Assembly: GCA_021613535.1 (NCBI GenBank)
Contig: CP075495.1
Coordinates: 10,974,001 to 11,038,000, forward strand
Source of the DNA: Adineta vaga
Lineage: Eukaryota; Animalia; Rotifera
DNA: 64,000 nucleotides
Direction of reading: 5' to 3'
Shown: piece after piece, positions 50,099-64,000 of the stretch
Layout of the letters: each line of letters opens with the position of its first letter
Position numbering within the stretch: the stretch's first letter is position 1
Notes under the pieces: model-generated
The model's input: the letters and a program-made list of their open reading frames with translations, nothing else
Told to the model about the DNA's origin: nothing
Database searches by the model: none
Program-made: the position numbers and the translations under genes

Positions 50099-53047
50099 AT
50101 GATTGTTCTTGAACCATATTCTTCCGAACTTCTATGGATATTAATTGTGGGTTTTATTATTGCATTTGTGTTAGCATTTGGAATCGGAGCTAACGATGTT
50201 GCTAATTCATTCGGTACGAGTGTAGGTAGTAAAGTAATAACATTACGACAGGCATGTATCCTTGCAACAATATTCGAAATACTTGGATCGATTTTAATTG
50301 GTAAGAAGAAAATAAATTTTATTAGAAAATTTATGATTAATAATTTAGGAGCAAAAGTGTCAGATACGATACGGAAAGGGATCATCGATCCAATGTTATT
50401 CGAAGATCCAAAAGAATTAATGCTTGGTCAAGTATCATCATTACTTAGTAAATCAAATAGTGTCAAAGAATTTCTTTTTAAATCATTTTTATTTCTTTTT
50501 AGGTTGTTGTATTTGGTTATTAGTTGCGACATTCTTTAATTTACCAGTCTCTGGTACACATAGTATTGTTGGTGCAACTGTTGGTTTTGCTCTTGTTGCT
50601 CATGGTTCTCGTGGTATCAAATGGATTGAATTTGCCAAAATTGGTATGTAATATAAAAACTAGTAATCAGTTGTTCACTGTATGAAATAAATCTATTATC
50701 AAGGTGGTTCATGGTTTGCTTCACCAGCATTAGCTGGTATCATATCGATTGCTGTTTTTACGTTCATACGAAAATTTATTCTTGAACAAGTAAAAATTTA
50801 TCTATGAATAAAATCGAATAAAATATTGTTTGTTATTAAGAATGATCAATTAAAAGTTGGTCTTCGTTGGTTACCGGCTTTCTATGGTGTTACAATTATG
50901 ATCAACGTTTTTTCCATACTTCTTTCAGCGCCACCTCGTTCGTTATATATATATATATATTTTAATCATTGATTGTAAACAATTTGAAATTGTTAATTTA
51001 GTTTTATATTTTGATCGTATTCCATTATGGGGAAAATTTGTTGCAACAATTCTTGTTGGACTTCTTGTTGGTTTATTTGTAATGGTTTTTGTTAAACCAC
51101 GCATGAGAAAAAGCATTGAAGGTTAGATACAATAATCTTCACTTTTTGAATATGGTATAAGAAAAGTTTTCTTTTTATTTAGAACTACTAAGAAAAAAAC
51201 AAGATCTTGACAGTCGAGGAGAAGAACCACAGTTGACTAAAACTGACGGACGATTTGAAACTTATACCGGTAAATTTTTCATCCGAGCATTTCATTCTAC
51301 TAATACATTTTTTTATCAACATCTAACATAAAAAACTGAGCAAATGATTGTTTTTTCTGCTCTTGAAATTTGCTCAATGTAAATTATCAAATGATGTAGG
51401 TATTGATTATGATGAATAATTTTAGTAACTCGTTTGGAAAATGTGAATACCAGTGACAAAGAAACACAAATTGATCATATATCAATGTTGAAAGAATTTG
51501 ATTTAATTCGTTATCAACAAAAACATCCCGATCAATTTCGTCCTTACGGTAAGAAAAACGACAAATAAATTGAATCTTAATCTGAATGATTGTTTTAGTT
51601 GAAATGCAACGAATTCGAAAAGATTCCGAAACAATGTCGAATGCAGGTGCAAGTACTATTTCACGTGTTCGCCGTGAAAGTGATCGTTATCGTGGTGATA
51701 ATACTCTATCCGATGTTGGAAGTATTAGTGGTCAACGACCCCTACCAATTGTTTGTGAATTCATTTAAATAAGATTCTCTTCATTAAATTTTGTTTTTTT
51801 AAGAAAACCAAAATCTATCGTCTTCCACAATATACCAATCCAACTAGTGCACCTGGTTCAATTTCAAATGAAAATAAAAGTTTATTATTATCTGCGGGTA
51901 ATCATTTTTCTATCTTTTTTACATATTTATTTGGTGATGGTTAGATATATCTAAATATTCTTTTAGTTTATATGTCCCGTAAGTGAGATATTTATTGAAT
52001 CGATCAATATAAATATATATATAAGATAAAGAAAATTTATTGCTAAAATGATTTCAATCAATTTTTTATGCATTATTGTGCATGTAATTCATATAGGGGA
52101 TTCATATTTGAGAAACAATGTATATTGATATTTTGCTCATGCTCATGCTATATTCTCTTTTTTTGGGCGTGCCTTTAGTTATATCATGAAATGAATTGAT
52201 ATATAATATATAAACACGTTTCTTTTCTTTTGTTTTTGTCTTTGATTAGATGATGATGATAATCTGTCAACAACATCAGGCAATCCACACAGTTCAAATG
52301 GAGAATTAGATGAAGTTGAAGATAAAATGCCGGAAATTCCGGAGAAAAAAGTTTGTTAAAAAAATGAAGTGACGTTTAATATGATTTTTTTTATGTAGAA
52401 AATAATTGACACAACCAATGATTCGATTGAAGTTGCTGGAATTTTTAAATATCTACAAATTCTTACAGCTATTTTTGGTGCTTTTGCTCATGGTGGTAAT
52501 GATGTCAGGTAAGTTTTTGTTTCGAAAGGAAAGTAGTTTGCATTCTTGTTTTTCTTTCAAGTAATGCTATTGGCCCATTGATTGGTCTCTGGTTAATCTT
52601 TGTTGATGGTAGTGTAGCTGCTAAATCAAACACACCACTCTGGGTACTTTTCTATGGTGGTCTTGGAATATCAGTTGGTCTATGGGTTTGGGGTCGTCGA
52701 GTTATTCGTACAATTGGTGAAGACTTGACAAAAATTACACCATCAAGGTAATGAATCTTTACTGTTCGTTTATGAATCATTGACTTTCAATCGTTTGATT
52801 TTCTAGCGGTTTTGTAATTGAAATTTCAACTGCATTTACTGTTCTTTTCGCATCAAATTTATCCATTCCAATCAGTACAACTCATTGCAAAGTTGGTAGT
52901 GTCGTAGCTATTGGTCGTTTTCGTTCGAAACAAAGTGTGGATTGGTCATTATTTCGTAATATTATCGTCGCTTGGGTTGTTACTGTTCCTGTCACAGGTG
53001 GAATTGCCGCAGGTGTTATGGCTCTTCTACGTTTTATGTTTCTCTAA
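50099..53047 (+). CDS. SLC20A: Sodium-dependent phosphate transporter, PiT/SLC20 family
   Basis: [52 protein letters not shown] and [11 protein letters not shown]. Confidence 0.96.
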
Positions 53048-53264: not shown

Positions 53265-56200
53265 ATGGCACATAGTAAGGTAAATTAGATAGTTAGAATA
53301 TCTAAGACTTCATTTGGTGACTTTGTTTGTTTGTTTGTTTGTCTGTAGGAAGCATTAGCACTTGTTGTTGATATTGGTGCTGGAATGTGTGATGCAATAC
53401 CAGGATATGATTCACCGTTACAGATGGCATCTGATATTCTTCAAATGATTGTTCAACGTAAGGTATGTATCATCGTATAATCAAAGATTTCTTGTAAATT
53501 TTATTTATTTATTAATATTAAGAAATCATTCATAGAAGATCGTATTGTTTAATATCTATTGAAAGTAATATTTATTTGAGTTTTATAACTTTTATATTCT
53601 TGCTTTGATGATAACTGATCGCTTCTAATAATAAACAACAACAACAGTATTCGAGAAGTTCAACTTAGTAATTAGCATACTCTTTGCTTTCGAGAAAAAA
53701 ATAGCTTGTTGATTTAAATTATCATTAAGTTAAATTATTCGTTTATACGTATCTGTTGTTTGCTTACAATTTCTTGCTTTTGTCTTACTATTTTTTCCTC
53801 TTATTATTGATTATTCTTTTTCTATGAATAGATGTTTCAAGAGAGTAAAGATGAATTAGCATTGATTCTCTATGGTGCTGATGAATCAAACAATGATTTA
53901 GCCGATGAAGATAATTATCGTAATATTAATGTTGTCTTTCCACTTTCACCAGCAAATTGGCATCTATTTGAAGAAATACAAAAAATCAAACCTGGCAATA
54001 ATCCGGCTGATTGTAAAAAATACTATTCGTTTGATAGATAGATCGATCATTGAATTGAACTTTGCTTTTCTAGTGGTGGATGCTGTTGTTGTTGCTGCCG
54101 ATCATCTTCGTCGTGAGACTGAGTGAGATGAATACGAACAAGTTTTCGATTAGAAAAAAAATATTTATTTGCAGAGGAAAACATGGTTTTGCAGCAAAAC
54201 GTGTGATGTTATTTACGAATGCAGCAACAACATTTAGTGATCATAGTCTTAAAACAATTCTGGATTCTCTTCGACGTCAAGATATTATTGTAGATGCTAT
54301 TGGTCCAACATGGGGTCAAGCAGATGAAGATGATAATCAAGAAAATAATTATTCCGATTCACCGATAGAATTAAATGGGCATGATAATGATGAAGAACAG
54401 TCAGATGCTGCTCGTCCAACAACAAATGGCCATCAGAATCATCAAACTCAGAAGAAACCTTTAACACAACAACAACAAACGGGTATTCGAGTTATTGGTG
54501 AAATTGTTAATAATACTGAAGGAACTTTATTTACATTTCGGTATGTTTTCAGGGAGAAAAAAAGAGACGTCTTGATCTCTATTTCTTTTCTCTTTTTCTA
54601 GAGAAGCATTAACTATTCTCAGTGTTCATCAATCAAAAATAGTCAAACCTACAGCAACGAAATATATCATGCAATTAGCTGATCTTAAATTACATATTTG
54701 TACTTATATTCAGGTTGAAATGAAATGACAATTAATATTAAAACTGTAACAACTTCTATTTTATATAGGTTAAAGATAATAAGCCCGGAATTTTTCGTTT
54801 TAAAAAAGTGTATGCACGTGATCCAACAACAGAAATAAAAGTTGATCGTGGACGTTATACGAAAGATGAACAAGATCAAGAAATTGAAAAAGAAGAATTA
54901 ACAGATGGCTTTCGTTATGGCACAACATTTGTACCGATTAATAAAGAAACACTTGATGAAATGAAGTATCAAAGTGAAAAATGTTTCTCTATTATCGCAT
55001 TTTCCGATGCAAATATGGTATGTCAGATTTCTTTCTTTTTCGAATGATATTTTCTTATCTGATGCACTGTATTTTGTTTTAGATGAAGCGAAGTTTATAC
55101 TTAGGTGATACTGTTTATGAAGTAATTGCTGAAGCGAGTTTTGAAGTATGTATTCGTTGAATGAAAAATGAATGCTAGATTAAATGACTTTCATTAAGTA
55201 TTGAATAGTTAATTGCATATGATTATTTCTTTGAAAAGAAGAAATATCTTTTCTACTGTAATTTATTGCATTGTAGGAAGAAGCTCAAGCATTTGCTGGT
55301 CTTGTTCAAGCTATGTATGACACAAACACCGTTGCTATTGTTCGTAAATGTTTCAGCGAACGAAGTGCACCTGAACTTGGCTATTTACGTCCACATATTG
55401 CACACGATCATATTGTAAATCAAGAAATAGCTTGTATTGATAAGAGATATGGACACAAATGTTTTTCTATCTAGTGTATGTATTATATAAAATTACCATT
55501 TGCTGAAGATTTACGTGAGTTTGAATTTGATAATCTCGATGCAATTAAAAAGAACCATCCAAGCGATGAACAATTAAAATGTATTGATAATTTAATAACT
55601 GCAATGGATTTGACACATGCTGATCGAGGGTATGATTCAATTAACACTATAGGTAGATGTAAATTCATAATTGATTTTTCTCTACTTAGTGGTGAAGAAG
55701 CACTTCGACCAGAATATGTATTTAATCCATATATTCAACGAATGTTTCAAGTATGCTAATTTCAAAGATTTTCTGTAATTTAAATCGAATTTTAGTCCAT
55801 TGCTCGACGTGCTGTAACACCTGATGAACCATTGTCATTATCGAATACAATTATGGAAATGAATGATACATTATTACGATCACTTGCTGCGAAAAGTAAA
55901 CGAACATTAGATGCAATTCATGAAAAATTTGTTCTTCGAGATACGGATCGTCGACAAAAGATCACTACGGGTGATGCTTTGTTTGGTAATATTGATGGGT
56001 AAGATAAAACAAATTTTTTATGAAATTCGAAAGGAAAATTCTTTTGATTTAGTTCGTCAAAGAAACCTCGTCTAGATGAGAATGAAAATATTGAAGAACC
56101 AACAACGGACTCAGGAATTACAAATGCTGATTCTGCTTCTTTCGAAACTCAAGCAGCAGCAAAAAAGAAAGCAGCTATACGAAATGTTGGTACATTGCAC

Positions 56201-56957: not shown

Positions 56958-58225
56958 TTACATAGCTAATGAAATATCTTCTTGTATTGATAATTTTGAA
57001 CTATATTCCGTTTTCATTTTCATACTACTTGTAATAGTTCGTATTGGTTGATCATTACTCAATGTCGTTTGATACAATGATCCAACATCATAAGTATCAT
57101 GTTCAGTTAATACAGCAACTAAACGATAGAATTGTAAGAAAAGAATAATGCCATTTTTACATGTGAAAAAGACTGTTGAATAACTTCGAACATCAAATTT
57201 AATAACAGCAACAAGACGAAGAGCTAATTGTGTTGCTGAACAACTCATGAGATTTAATTCATAGAGATACCATGCATCATTTTCAAATAAACGTTGCATT
57301 GGATAGAGAAGAAACATTCGTCGACGACGACGTTTTTTAATTGCATGACGAAAACTATCTAAATGTGCTGAACGATTGGTTTTACCAGCTGCTGATACAT
57401 TTGTAGCAAATTGTAATAATGACCATGATAGAACAGTTAATGTTGCTAATAACATTCGTTGAGAAGTAAGAACATGATCTTCATTCAATATTGTTAATAA
57501 GTCTACAATATCCGATGCAATTGACATATAAACAAGTAATAATTGTGATAAATTAGAACGACTTGTAATACCTTTTGGTAATAACCAACGACCAACAATA
57601 ATCAAAAATAAAAGTGATAATTCTAATGCCATTATTTTCGTATGTAAATCAACATTGACAGGAAGCTAATCGAAAAGCAAAAGAAAAGATGATGCGATTC
57701 AAATAGAGAAAAAAAAGAAAAGAAAAACAATTCATTTTTATACTTTTTTCAGTAGATCATTATAAGGTAATGCTTGACTCGGATAGAATTCATCAGTACC
57801 CATACGAATCATAAATTGATCGGAGAATGCTGTATTTGTACTATTACTACCTGTACGATAACTCGTTCGTCGTATATCAACACGACGCATTTCTAATAAC
57901 CATAAACATGGCATTGATGATAGGATAAAAATAAGAAACGAAGGTGAAAACCTAAATATACAGAATTTAAATTGCAAACAAAAATCGATATAAATCAATT
58001 GTCATACCATTTTGGTTCATGTCCTTGTCGTTCAATAATAGTAACAACAAGTTCAATCAATATAAATATCGTTCCACATAAATTCATCAAACACCAATAA
58101 TCTTTCATATCATCGTAAAGAAAATAAGTTGCAACTAAATTATGTGAACAAAATGCAAGACGTACAATCGTTGCTTGAAGAATATCAAACGATTGACAAA
58201 TACGATAATGGATTGTTGCAAGCAT
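56958..58225 (-). CDS. TMEM26-like multipass membrane protein, 3 exons
   Basis: KWFSPSFLIFILSSMPCLWLLE, LIIVGRWLLPKG..SRSNLSQLLLVYMSIASDI and VFFTCKN. Confidence 0.85.
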
Positions 58226-59209: not shown

Positions 59210-61360
59210 ATGGTTTCAAAAAACGATTTCAACGACGAACATTTCGATATAGTTGATATCGATGAAGAAGATAAGGAAAAGAAAATTCATCAATGTATAT
59301 CGAATTCGTCATTTTCTGAGAATAGAAATGAACAATTCAATGATCTTCTAGCATTAAGTTCTCTAATATCACAGCCAGGCAATACAGATGATTTAACATC
59401 GTCTGAAAGTCGTTTGATACATTCGAAAATTCAACGTTTATTTCATTTTCTTGTGAATGATGTTTATAATGAATCAATGACTCGAGCACAAGGCGAACAA
59501 ATTTCAAATTTAACTCAAATTGATCATACATTGATAAATTTAAATCGAAATGCAACTTTAAAATTTCGAAATTATAAACAATTTCGTGAACAAGTTTGTT
59601 TGTTTGAATTCTGTTTTTCATAAAAAAAAGAATACAATCATTCTTTAGCTATTAGCATCTTCTAATATACGACGAAATACAAGTGAACCATTAAGAAATT
59701 CAATTGATCGAAAAACATACTTTAATCAAATGACAAATAATTTTAATTCACAATATCAATCATTGCGTTATCGCATTCATTGGCTTGTTCATAGTTCATT
59801 TTTTAAATGGTTCATCAGTATCGTCATTTGTTTAGATGCCGTAAGTTTAAACTTCATTATTTTATTAACTCATTGACAATATCATATTCATGCAGATTAG
59901 TGTAGCAATTACAGCAGAATATAGTGCACCAGATGATTCTCAAACGATGATTTATCGTATAGCTATATTTATTAATCGATGTATTTTATTTGTCTATTTA
60001 TTTGAATTAATTTTCAAATGGATTGGTATTTATCTCTTAATTATTCTAGTAGATAACGAGAATTTGTTTCTATTTAGATAATTTTACAAATTTTTGGTAT
60101 TCACCCGTTAATATTTTAGAATTCATTCTTACAGCTATATCATTAATTAATTTAATAAGTGAAATTTATATTGATACAACTGATGATACAAGTCTCGAGA
60201 TAAATAGAAAGTTTCATAATAATAATCACGATAAAAAAACAACTCATACTTTACAACGTATCAGGTAAACTAACATATTTTCTTCTCGTTAATTCGATAC
60301 ATAAAATGGACATTATCTATATTTGATATTTAGATCCTATGGTTCGATTTTATCACTATTTCGGACATTACGTATGTTACGTATTTTACGTATATTAGAA
60401 GTTGCATTTCGTTTTACACAAGTACGAATTGTATTTATTGCTTTAAGTCGTTCAGTGAAACTTATTTTTCATGTTGTTCTTCTAACAATTATAATCAATT
60501 ATTTTTTTGCATTGATTGCTCTTTATTTAACACAATTTGGATTGAATACAACATCGGAAGAACATAGCAAAAAGATAAATTTATTATTTGGAACAGGTTT
60601 TACAAAAAGCAATCTTTCTTTTTTGAAAAATCTCTCTCTCTCTATATATATATATATTCGTAGTACCTCGTGCATTTATAACTGTTTTTCGTTTATTTAC
60701 TAAAGATGAATGGTTCGAAATTAAATTAGAAATGTATTCTTTAAAAATCAATCCATTTATTATTGATCTATATGTTATTAGTTGGCTATTCTTTGGTGGT
60801 TATGTACTCAATCCATTGTTGATTGGAGCAATGGTAGATTTCTTTACTTCGATCGAAGAAAACTTTTTTGAGATTTGTTTGTTTCCGTACAGGTTGGAAC
60901 ATTTGATGAAACTCGAAAGGAATTAACTGAAGGTATTAAACATATCATATCGAAAACAGATCTAACATTAAATGAAACGAATTCAATGGAAAATGAATCA
61001 TCATCAACATTTTCTTCATTTCTTGAACATATCAATTCAATTGATACTGAAAATGATCGATTCGATGAATGGCTTCGTCTTACTTCGGATCAAATTCGTT
61101 TACTTAGTTAGTTATCAATATTTTATGATAATTTATGTTTGTTTTTAGTTCAGGATCGTACTGAAGTTCGATGGCCTATTTATACAGCATTTTATTATCT
61201 TCAATTACTTGAAATCTATTTTGAAAATCTTGTTGAACGACAATTATTATTTGATTTTTTTTCAATTCATTTACTAACATTACATGAGAGAGAAACGAAA
61301 TCTTTAAATCCACCAATACTTTCATCATCATCGTCGTCGTCATCGGACGATGAAGGATAA
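59210..61360 (+). CDS. CATSPER2: Single-repeat 6TM voltage-gated cation channel subunit, CatSper2-like, 8 exons
   Basis: S2-S3 ELIFKWIDNFTNFW, S4 RTLRMLRILRILE..RFTQVRI, pore FITVFRLFTKDEW, S6 ..IGAMVGTFDETRKEL, and C-terminal WPIYTAFYYLQLLEIYFENLVER. All GT-AG exons join without stops. Confidence 0.8.
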
Positions 61361-62724: not shown

Positions 62725-64000
62725 ATGGATTGTATTGTGGTTTCAGACGACGAGAATGATGAATTCGATGACCTCGAACTCATCACTGCTGCCGAGCAAT
62801 TCGATTCGGAGAATAAGTAGGGATGAAATGTAAATTTTCTTTAGTTTTCTTTCATTTCTTTTCGTCTCTTTAGTGCATCAAATAATAAAACTGATGAAGA
62901 TAACGAATTACTTACGATTGAATTAGAAATCTCGCAAATCGATGAAGAAATTTCTCGTCTTCGTCAAAAACGTTTACAATTAATTGTTCGACAACAAACA
63001 TTAAAAGATAAAATTCAATTAAATCAACGATCAACATTAGACACGAATCTTGTCGAACAATGGCAACGAACCGGTAAAGACATTCAAAGAAAATGTTCGA
63101 CTTTTATATACCTATCATATAATTCTTTAGATTTTCCTTGGAGTTCAAAAGTCGAAGAAGTTCGAACAACAATCTTCAAAATTTCATCATTTCGACAATG
63201 GCAACTTGAAACTATCAATGTCACTTTATCAAACCGTGATTGTATTCTAATCATGCCAACTGGTGGTGGTAAATCATTATGTTATCAATTACCAGCCATC
63301 ATATCAGATGGTAAATAGACAAAGACATTTCCATTTCTCTCAGATTTCGAATTATTTTTAGGCATAACTATTGTTGTTTCACCCTTGATATCTCTTGTTG
63401 AAGATCAGGTATATGCATTGAAAAATCTAAATATTGATGCACGTTCATTGAATACATCAACACCACGTGAGGAACAAACAGAAATTATGCATATACTTGA
63501 TGGAAAAAAGACGACTGATTCCACATTGAAGATACTTTATTTAACACCGGGTAAGAAAGAAGATGATGATTTAAATGAAGATAGAATATAACATGATTGT
63601 TGTAGAGAAAATTGCTAAAAGTAAAACGATCATGGCGAAATTACAGAAACTTTATGAAACCAATCGATTTGCTAGATTAATTGTCGATGAAGTACATTGT
63701 GTTTCACAATTTGGACATGATTTTCGTCCAGGTTTGAATTCTTATTCGATTGAAATTTGCATAATAATTCTTTTTCTTTTTATAAATACAATTTTTAGAT
63801 TATAAATATCTATCCATATTCAAACGGCAATTTCCTAATGTATCTATCTTAGGTTTAACTGCAACAGCAACAACTAAAGTTATCAATGATGTTCAACAAA
63901 TATTAAACATCTCGAATTGTATATTATTTCGTGCGCCATTCAATCGAAAGAATCTTTTCTATGAAGTTTTACATAAATCTGATGTTAGTAAAGATGCCTT
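62725..64000 (+). CDS. RECQL: RecQ1 DNA helicase (5' part, runs off the window)
   Basis: N-terminal coiled coil, [55 protein letters not shown] and [10 protein letters not shown]. Confidence 0.95.

Follow-up and report, generated by a model that had tools for sequence, protein, structure and literature searches.

The best-scoring solved structure for the protein described here, from the bdelloid rotifer Adineta vaga, is mouse CatSper2 (PDB 7EEB chain B; also 9UBW chain B). Both proteins (583 residues in the bdelloid, 588 in mouse) consist of a single 6TM repeat with four basic residues in S4, and both have the filter F-T-x-D-x-W, the S2-S3 motif W(I/L)xxF(T/S)xFW and the post-S6 motif F(D/Q)xxR(K/S)EL; a weak match at the very C-terminus of both follows the pattern WP....F.Y..LLE....NLEER. 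The two proteins differ in the residue before the filter Asp, which is Lys in A. vaga (TKDEW) and Leu in mouse (TLDHW), in the placement of an acidic/Ser run, found in the extreme tail in A. vaga and mid-C-terminus in mouse, and in the N-terminal motif NATLKFRNYKQFRE, which is invariant in bdelloids and without counterpart in the alignment with mouse CatSper2. Similarity over S4-S6 amounts to only about 66 bits and, unlike the mouse, A. vaga has no known sperm.

The remaining pore subunits of the mouse channel, CatSper1, CatSper3 and CatSper4 (7EEB chains A, C and D), have the same architecture and filter type and are the expected heterotetramer partners of CatSper2, but match the A. vaga protein much more weakly. 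Next best after CatSper2 are T-type and L-type CaV repeats, which share the Ion_trans fold, the S4 arginine ladder and T-x-(D/E)-x-W; unlike the A. vaga protein, CaV channels have four fused repeats, lack the CatSper2 tail motif and score lower even when summed over two to four stretches. Bacterial NaV channels (NavAb and the NaChBac family) are likewise single-repeat, tetramer-forming 6TM proteins, but reach only 20-25 bits, are homotetrameric and lack long cytoplasmic ends; their filter is of the TLESW type.

The published record of CatSper in invertebrates was searched for rotifers. Romero and Nishigaki report CatSper as present in Brachiopoda and not in Mollusca, with rotifers unmentioned (PMC6660944), and rotifers are also unmentioned in a 2026 comparison of 47 species (PMC13674862). 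No paper substantively joining CatSper with rotifers, bdelloids, Adineta or Brachionus was found in the literature search, and we consider the A. vaga CatSper2 orthologue under selection to be real and previously unreported.

Gene structure and channel architecture

The window analysed is a stretch of 64 000 nucleotides of A. vaga contig CP075495.1 (positions 10,974,001 to 11,038,000), and all coordinates without a contig prefix refer to it. The gene lies at 59210-61360 on the plus strand, where eight exons with GT..AG borders splice into an uninterrupted frame of 583 codons; the introns are 42-69 nt long, all canonical GT..AG, and the region is AT-rich (27% G+C). The spliced translation of 583 residues is letter-for-letter the NCBI entry 'hypothetical protein I4U23_009204 [Adineta vaga]'. 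An intact eight-exon gene in a bdelloid host had been proposed from the nucleotide sequence alone (hereafter the sequence-only reading); borders, frame and identity to I4U23_009204 bear out the gene model, and the same identity settles the host. Searches of the haploid assembly with exon 5 and with a bdelloid profile found the gene in single copy.

All exons are on the plus strand. Exon 1 (59210-59593, aa 1-128) contains the start codon and the cytoplasmic N-terminus, including NATLKFRNYKQFRE (59549-59590), and is followed by the donor GT at 59594. Exon 2 (59649-59840, aa 129-192; AG/GT borders, phase 0) codes for a linker and the first part of S1. The end of S1, S2 (59959-60015) and the start of KWIDNFTNFW are in exon 3 (59896-60025); this motif spans the exon 3/4 junction, and exon 4 (60078-60264) continues with S3 (60113-60169) and the S3-S4 loop. 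Exon 5 (60334-60596) carries S4 (60347-60406), in which four Arg recur every third residue, the S4-S5 linker and S5 (60473-60529), and exon 6 (60664-60833) the pore helix, the filter TKDEW (60699-60713) and S6 (60753-60830). The post-S6 motif TFDETRKEL (60899-60925), which the profile aligns with TNFQNIRSEL of mouse, lies in exon 7 (60893-61106) together with a variable cytoplasmic linker. Exon 8 (61149-61360) holds the C-terminal helix motif WP..F.Y..LLE....N..ER (61172-61240), PPILSS, a Ser/Asp tail and the stop codon TAA (61358-61360); the tail of the protein reads WPIYTAFYYLQLLEIYFENLVER. The motifs quoted in the sequence-only reading, namely the Arg-rich S4, TKDEW, KWIDNFTNFW, TFDETRKEL and the tail WPIYTAFYYLQLLEIYFENLVER, are thus all present.

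Hydropathy placed S1 at aa 179-197, S2 at 214-232, S3 at 248-266, S5 at 345-363 and S6 at 416-441, and the S4 arginines are R308, R311, R314 and R317. TKDEW (aa 398-402) is the sole T-x-D-x-W in the protein. Pfam Ion_trans matched exon 5 (2.6e-9) and exon 6 (4.6e-4), with matches restricted to these two exons, and the flanking genes contain no Ion_trans exons; the 583 residues hold a single S1-S6 set and not four fused repeats. The features by which a CatSper pore subunit is recognized were found together: a single-repeat 6TM layout, the filter [T/S]-x-[D/E]-x-W with Asp, and basic residues at every third position of S4. An AlphaFold2 model built from a seven-sequence alignment (mean pLDDT 40, pTM 0.19) was too poor for a fold search.

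Family assignment and candidate partner subunits

Family membership was assigned by score ranking against mouse chains, not by tree placement. When exon 6 (pore and S6) was searched alone against all PDB chains, CatSper2 gave the only matches below E 3 (E 0.0032 and 0.0096), the next ones being CaV at E>3. The whole protein scored 73.9 and 68.2 bits to two CatSper2 entries, at most 56.8 bits to T-type CaV though summed over four repeats, and at most 25 bits to bacterial NaV; CatSper1, CatSper3 and CatSper4 were not among the best 60 PDB matches listed, which places them below 19.8 bits. A profile of seven bdelloid orthologues gave 88 bits (E 4.8e-24) to mouse CatSper2 (chain 7eeb_B) and 17.8 bits to CatSper4, with CatSper1 and CatSper3 not reported.

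The profile alignment to mouse CatSper2 runs collinearly from S1 through the final residue and takes in the S2-S3 motif, the filter and the post-S6 motif. Its first domain, the S1-S3 stretch, scored 30.3 bits. In the C-terminal stretch the last 61 profile positions align with mouse residues 526-588, weakly (10.4 bits, i-Evalue 1.6 for the whole bank); the residues common to both ends are WP, F, Y, LLE and NLxER. Neither exon 8 nor exon 4 alone had a meaningful match in PDB, and the C-terminal 138 residues searched against the ESM Atlas scored 0.82, which is chance level. The C-terminal motif match is therefore taken as supportive of CatSper2 and not as decisive. The vertebrate motifs given in the sequence-only reading were essentially right, the mouse chain 7eeb_B having MWLASFSLFW, FTLDHW, TNFQNIRSEL and WPRDSLFRYFELLEKLQYNLEER, and its CatSper2 assignment agrees with the PDB ranking of pore exon, whole protein and bdelloid profile, in each of which CatSper2 stands ahead of CaV/NaV, bacterial NaV and CatSper1/3/4. 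Judged by these comparisons, I4U23_009204 is probably an intact orthologue of CatSper2, which is one of the four pore-forming subunits of the sperm cation channel.

Candidate partners were located on the same chromosome (contig C2, which carries the CatSper2-like gene). The S4-S6 exon of a CatSper1-like gene lies at C2:3940757-3941188 on the minus strand and has six basic residues in S4 and the filter TLDDW. Its best single-repeat match is CatSper1 (82 and 78 bits, each in one stretch), against about 63-66 bits for NavAb-type channels and 35 bits for the best single CaV3 repeat. With the CatSper2-like gene, this makes two A. vaga genes whose best mouse counterparts are two different subunits, as orthology predicts. 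A divergent CatSper3/4-like gene at C2:9098513-9098974 (plus strand) codes for a single-repeat channel with the filter ITLEGV and matches CatSper3 and CatSper4 equally weakly (21 bits).

A fourth pore subunit was not found among about 60 Ion_trans/PKD_channel loci screened for T-x-D-x-W (150 of the 273 scan candidates were scored, and the CatSper2-like gene itself was unlisted). The CatSper1-like gene aside, the other loci screened are Kv, PKD or multi-repeat channels. Paralogue searches with exon 5, the bdelloid profile and the CatSper1-like or CatSper3/4-like exons returned self matches and CaV repeats only; a weak match at C3:11420787 was rejected as spurious. Exon-by-exon scans with the Pfam families CATSPERB_C, Beta-prop_CATSPERD and CATSPERG_beta-prop brought up no A. 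vaga candidates and were equally silent in control genomes. The search for further subunits outlined with the sequence-only reading was thus answered in part, positively for CatSper1-like and divergent CatSper3/4-like genes, while for beta, gamma and delta A. vaga and the controls gave the same silence.

Conservation and selection in bdelloids

Annotated orthologues were found in A. ricciae, A. steineri, Rotaria sordida, R. sp. Silwood1, R. magnacalcarata and Didymodactylos carnosus, with 54-75% identity to A. vaga; in databases they are named only 'unnamed protein product' or 'Ion transport domain-containing protein'. Bdelloid-like contigs of a Logan run and of metagenomes also bear the gene. 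When the annotated proteins of A. ricciae and two Rotaria species were mapped back to their genomes, they gave the same eight exons; exon 5 always measures 263 nt and exon 6 always 170 nt. The seven bdelloid sequences show no variation in S4 (including R308, R311, R314 and R317), the S4-S5 linker, TKDEW, S6, the post-S6 motif or the tail motif. The upstream neighbours of the gene are Ku and Tmem26 in A. vaga, A. ricciae, Rotaria and the Logan contig, and Ku only in Didymodactylos; on the downstream side, A. vaga and A. ricciae both have a RecQ-type helicase. The gene is at the same locus in all bdelloid genera sampled.

Selection was estimated by the Nei-Gojobori method. Values of dN/dS were 0.17 for A. 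vaga/A. ricciae, 0.27 for A. vaga/Didymodactylos, 0.33 for A. vaga/R. sordida and 0.44 for a close Rotaria pair, and 0.08-0.26 within the membrane part; at most one bootstrap replicate in 1,000 reached dN/dS of 1 or more. The N-terminal 170 codons of the closest Rotaria pair were near neutral (0.97). Third-position G+C is 7-15% in most of the bdelloid species compared, with an overall range of 7-32%, so that synonymous divergence is underestimated and the true dN/dS is probably lower. The bdelloid CatSper2-like gene evolves under purifying selection, which is strongest in the membrane domain. The retention claimed in the sequence-only reading, for which dN/dS across rotifer orthologues had been named as a check, is upheld by the range of 0.17-0.44 with bootstrap intervals that exclude 1. 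Both the identity as a CatSper2 orthologue and its selective maintenance in a class without known males are well supported by these comparisons.

Expression, cell context and alternative readings

Public sequencing runs were used to look for transcripts. No run recorded as RNA contains the gene, and nine putative RNA runs with the species label of the runs richest in its sequence words contain almost none of those words (contigs only, RNA type guessed). In a comparison of four runs, two 151-nt contigs from a differently labelled run lie on exons 6 and 7; one enters intron 7 by 5 nt without mismatch, and would accordingly stem from unspliced RNA or DNA, and the second ends at a masked microsatellite. 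A spliced fragment of 287 aa considered as a transcript was rejected, being genome annotation. These data weakly suggest low expression of the CatSper2-like gene in cultured animals and are not evidence of silence. No conserved RFX X-box was found within 700 nt upstream of the gene in five species.

By analogy with the family, the CatSper2-like protein, the CatSper1-like protein (C2:3.94 Mb), the CatSper3/4-like protein (C2:9.10 Mb) and a further subunit would assemble into a heterotetramer whose Ca2+-selective ring would be built from acidic filter residues, one from each subunit. Such a channel would be expected in the membrane of a motile cilium or flagellum, where depolarization or alkalinization would admit Ca2+ and alter the beat. 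The conserved C-terminal helix, which has a weak counterpart in mouse CatSper2, probably serves for the docking of a cytoplasmic partner; no role for the CatSper2 C-terminus was found in the literature search.

To our knowledge bdelloid males have never been described, none having been seen in centuries of observation, and we know of no CatSper protein outside sperm wherever it has been examined. Since bdelloid males are unknown, the gene would function in female cells of a non-sperm kind or else in rare males that have escaped notice, and we lean towards the former. Use in female non-sperm cells, either those with motile cilia in the corona, the flame bulbs or the oviduct, or a different cell type that signals through Ca2+, whether by co-option or as an old second role, has in our estimate somewhat less than an even chance of being correct. 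It agrees with the lack of any described male and with class-wide purifying selection, which is explained most easily if the gene is used in every generation. A precedent for a role outside sperm comes from Ciona, in which CatSper mRNAs occur weakly beyond the testis and CatSper3 knock-outs are stunted in growth (PMC10652287). Hanson et al. likewise found 22 of 39 Brachionus 'male gametogenesis' genes to be transcribed in A. ricciae and concluded that their roles are not sperm-exclusive (PMC3701536). The scarcity of the gene's words in putative whole-animal RNA runs, the lack of an upstream RFX X-box in any of the five species and the restriction of known CatSper protein to sperm argue against use in female cells.

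That same restriction in characterized hosts speaks for the second reading, retention of CatSper2 for the sperm of rare unseen males and hence cryptic sex, which we rate as rather unlikely. The gene is intact and constrained and has a CatSper1-like partner, and RNA-type runs of cultured animals lack its words, a weak point given that contigs only were searched and the RNA type was guessed. Population-genomic recombination signals in A. vaga have been read as rare sex, as cited in a passage of PMC11779601. Selection on male-only genes, however, weakens as males become rare, yet dN/dS in the transmembrane part is as low as 0.08-0.26, and the long record of observation without a male also counts against this reading. 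A HAP2-type gamete fusogen was not found in the A. vaga genome (HAP2-GCS1, 14.6 bits, below cut-off), in a scan that was uninformative. The fuller proposal, in which a working bdelloid CatSper channel of CatSper1, CatSper2 and further subunits is maintained for the flagellated sperm of rare undiscovered males, is in our view distinctly doubtful.

The CatSper2 orthologue, accompanied by a CatSper1-like gene at the least, is constrained across the whole class Bdelloidea, the textbook 'ancient asexuals', and the question of cryptic sex versus co-option becomes testable with one probe set. Should its transcripts turn out to mark a hidden male germ line, bdelloids could no longer count as asexual, and the gene would serve as a molecular marker by which cryptic males or their germ cells could be traced. 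Should the transcripts instead mark cilia of females or some other cells, bdelloids would be the first animals with a main CatSper role outside sperm, which would change the reading of the patchy distribution of CatSper in animals. Either way, the annotations 'hypothetical protein' and 'Ion transport domain-containing protein' can be upgraded.

Both uses presuppose a CatSper2 gene. If the protein were instead a bdelloid-specific single-repeat CaV-like channel, its resemblance to CatSper2 would be convergent or shared ancestral. Three homologue searches (with a full-length relative, a bdelloid alignment and A. vaga residues 175-470) returned bdelloid proteins only, which speaks for such an origin; the word pre-filter of these searches prevents them from reaching a distant CatSper2, which accounts for the bdelloid-only result, and nothing is implied about monogononts. 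A search of representative proteins with exon 5 gave bdelloid fragments and then multi-repeat channels. The nearest named ESM Atlas clusters were CatSper3 (0.96) and CatSper2 (0.95 and 0.95), and the marginal lead of CatSper3 also favours a CaV-like origin, as do the T-x-D-x-W of T-type CaV repeats and the fact that placement in CatSper2 is by score ranking. Against it stand the scores, CatSper2 being ahead of every four-repeat channel despite their summed values, the similarity that runs collinearly from S1 to the final residues and takes in the weakly matched CatSper2 tail motif, and the separate A. vaga gene that pairs with CatSper1. We regard a non-CatSper origin of the gene as unlikely, and the CaV-like channel in particular as improbable.

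That the gene is a decaying, non-functional relic of a sexual ancestor, as the lack of RNA evidence in the runs examined and the near-neutral N-terminal codons of the closest Rotaria pair might suggest, is extremely improbable, since at least eight species, drawn from across the deepest bdelloid split, have intact frames, splice sites are conserved and overall dN/dS is far below 1; the selection data contradict a pseudogene.

Candidate pore subunits on the window chromosome

The A. vaga chromosome carrying the window (G000:C2) contains a CatSper1-like gene at G000:C2:3940757-3941188 on the minus strand (positions 2258-2689 of locus L008), in which S4 has six basic residues, one at each third position, the filter reads TLDDW, and CatSper1 scores highest among the single-repeat matches in the PDB (82 bits). 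A divergent single-repeat channel gene is located on the plus strand at G000:C2:9098513-9098974 (2514-2975 of locus L009). Its filter, ITLEGV, has Glu in place of Asp and no Trp, and its matches to CatSper3 and CatSper4 are both weak and equal, at 21 bits. This gene may encode a third or fourth pore subunit, or a channel of altered selectivity.

Internal features and neighbours of the CatSper2 gene

The cytoplasmic N-terminal motif NATLKFRNYKQFRE (window 59549-59590, amino acids 114-127) was unchanged in all bdelloid orthologues, whereas mouse CatSper2 has no aligned counterpart. Most of intron 5 is occupied by a (CT)n(TA)n microsatellite (window 60617-60665), which was masked in the read alignment, so that alignments end at the exon 6 border. 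Neighbouring genes are a PHO4 phosphate transporter (50099-50539, +), a Ku70/80-like gene (54080-55759, +), Tmem26 (56958-57632, −; Pfam 4.6e-36) and a RecQ-type helicase with a DEVHC...GHDFRP motif (63385-63805, +). The order Ku, Tmem26, CatSper2 is common to bdelloid genera.

Orthologue models, metagenome copies and codon composition

The public Didymodactylos carnosus model (L072 4001-5342) has a single first exon of 1,342 nt and 19 additional residues within S1, which look like unremoved introns or mis-annotation and not a genuine difference. Bdelloid-like homologues with 62–86% identity to Adineta and Rotaria were present on three metagenome contigs of 27% G+C (L075 1345-1638, L076 and L077). 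Their similarity ends where S5 begins, and exon 6, sought downstream, was not found within 600 nt; the copy may be damaged, or its intron may be longer. Across the coding sequences of the five CatSper2 orthologues, Rotaria and A. vaga have extremely low G+C at third positions (7–9% and 15%, respectively), compared with 32% in A. ricciae. Owing to this unevenness, synonymous distances among the AT-rich species appear smaller than those within Adineta.
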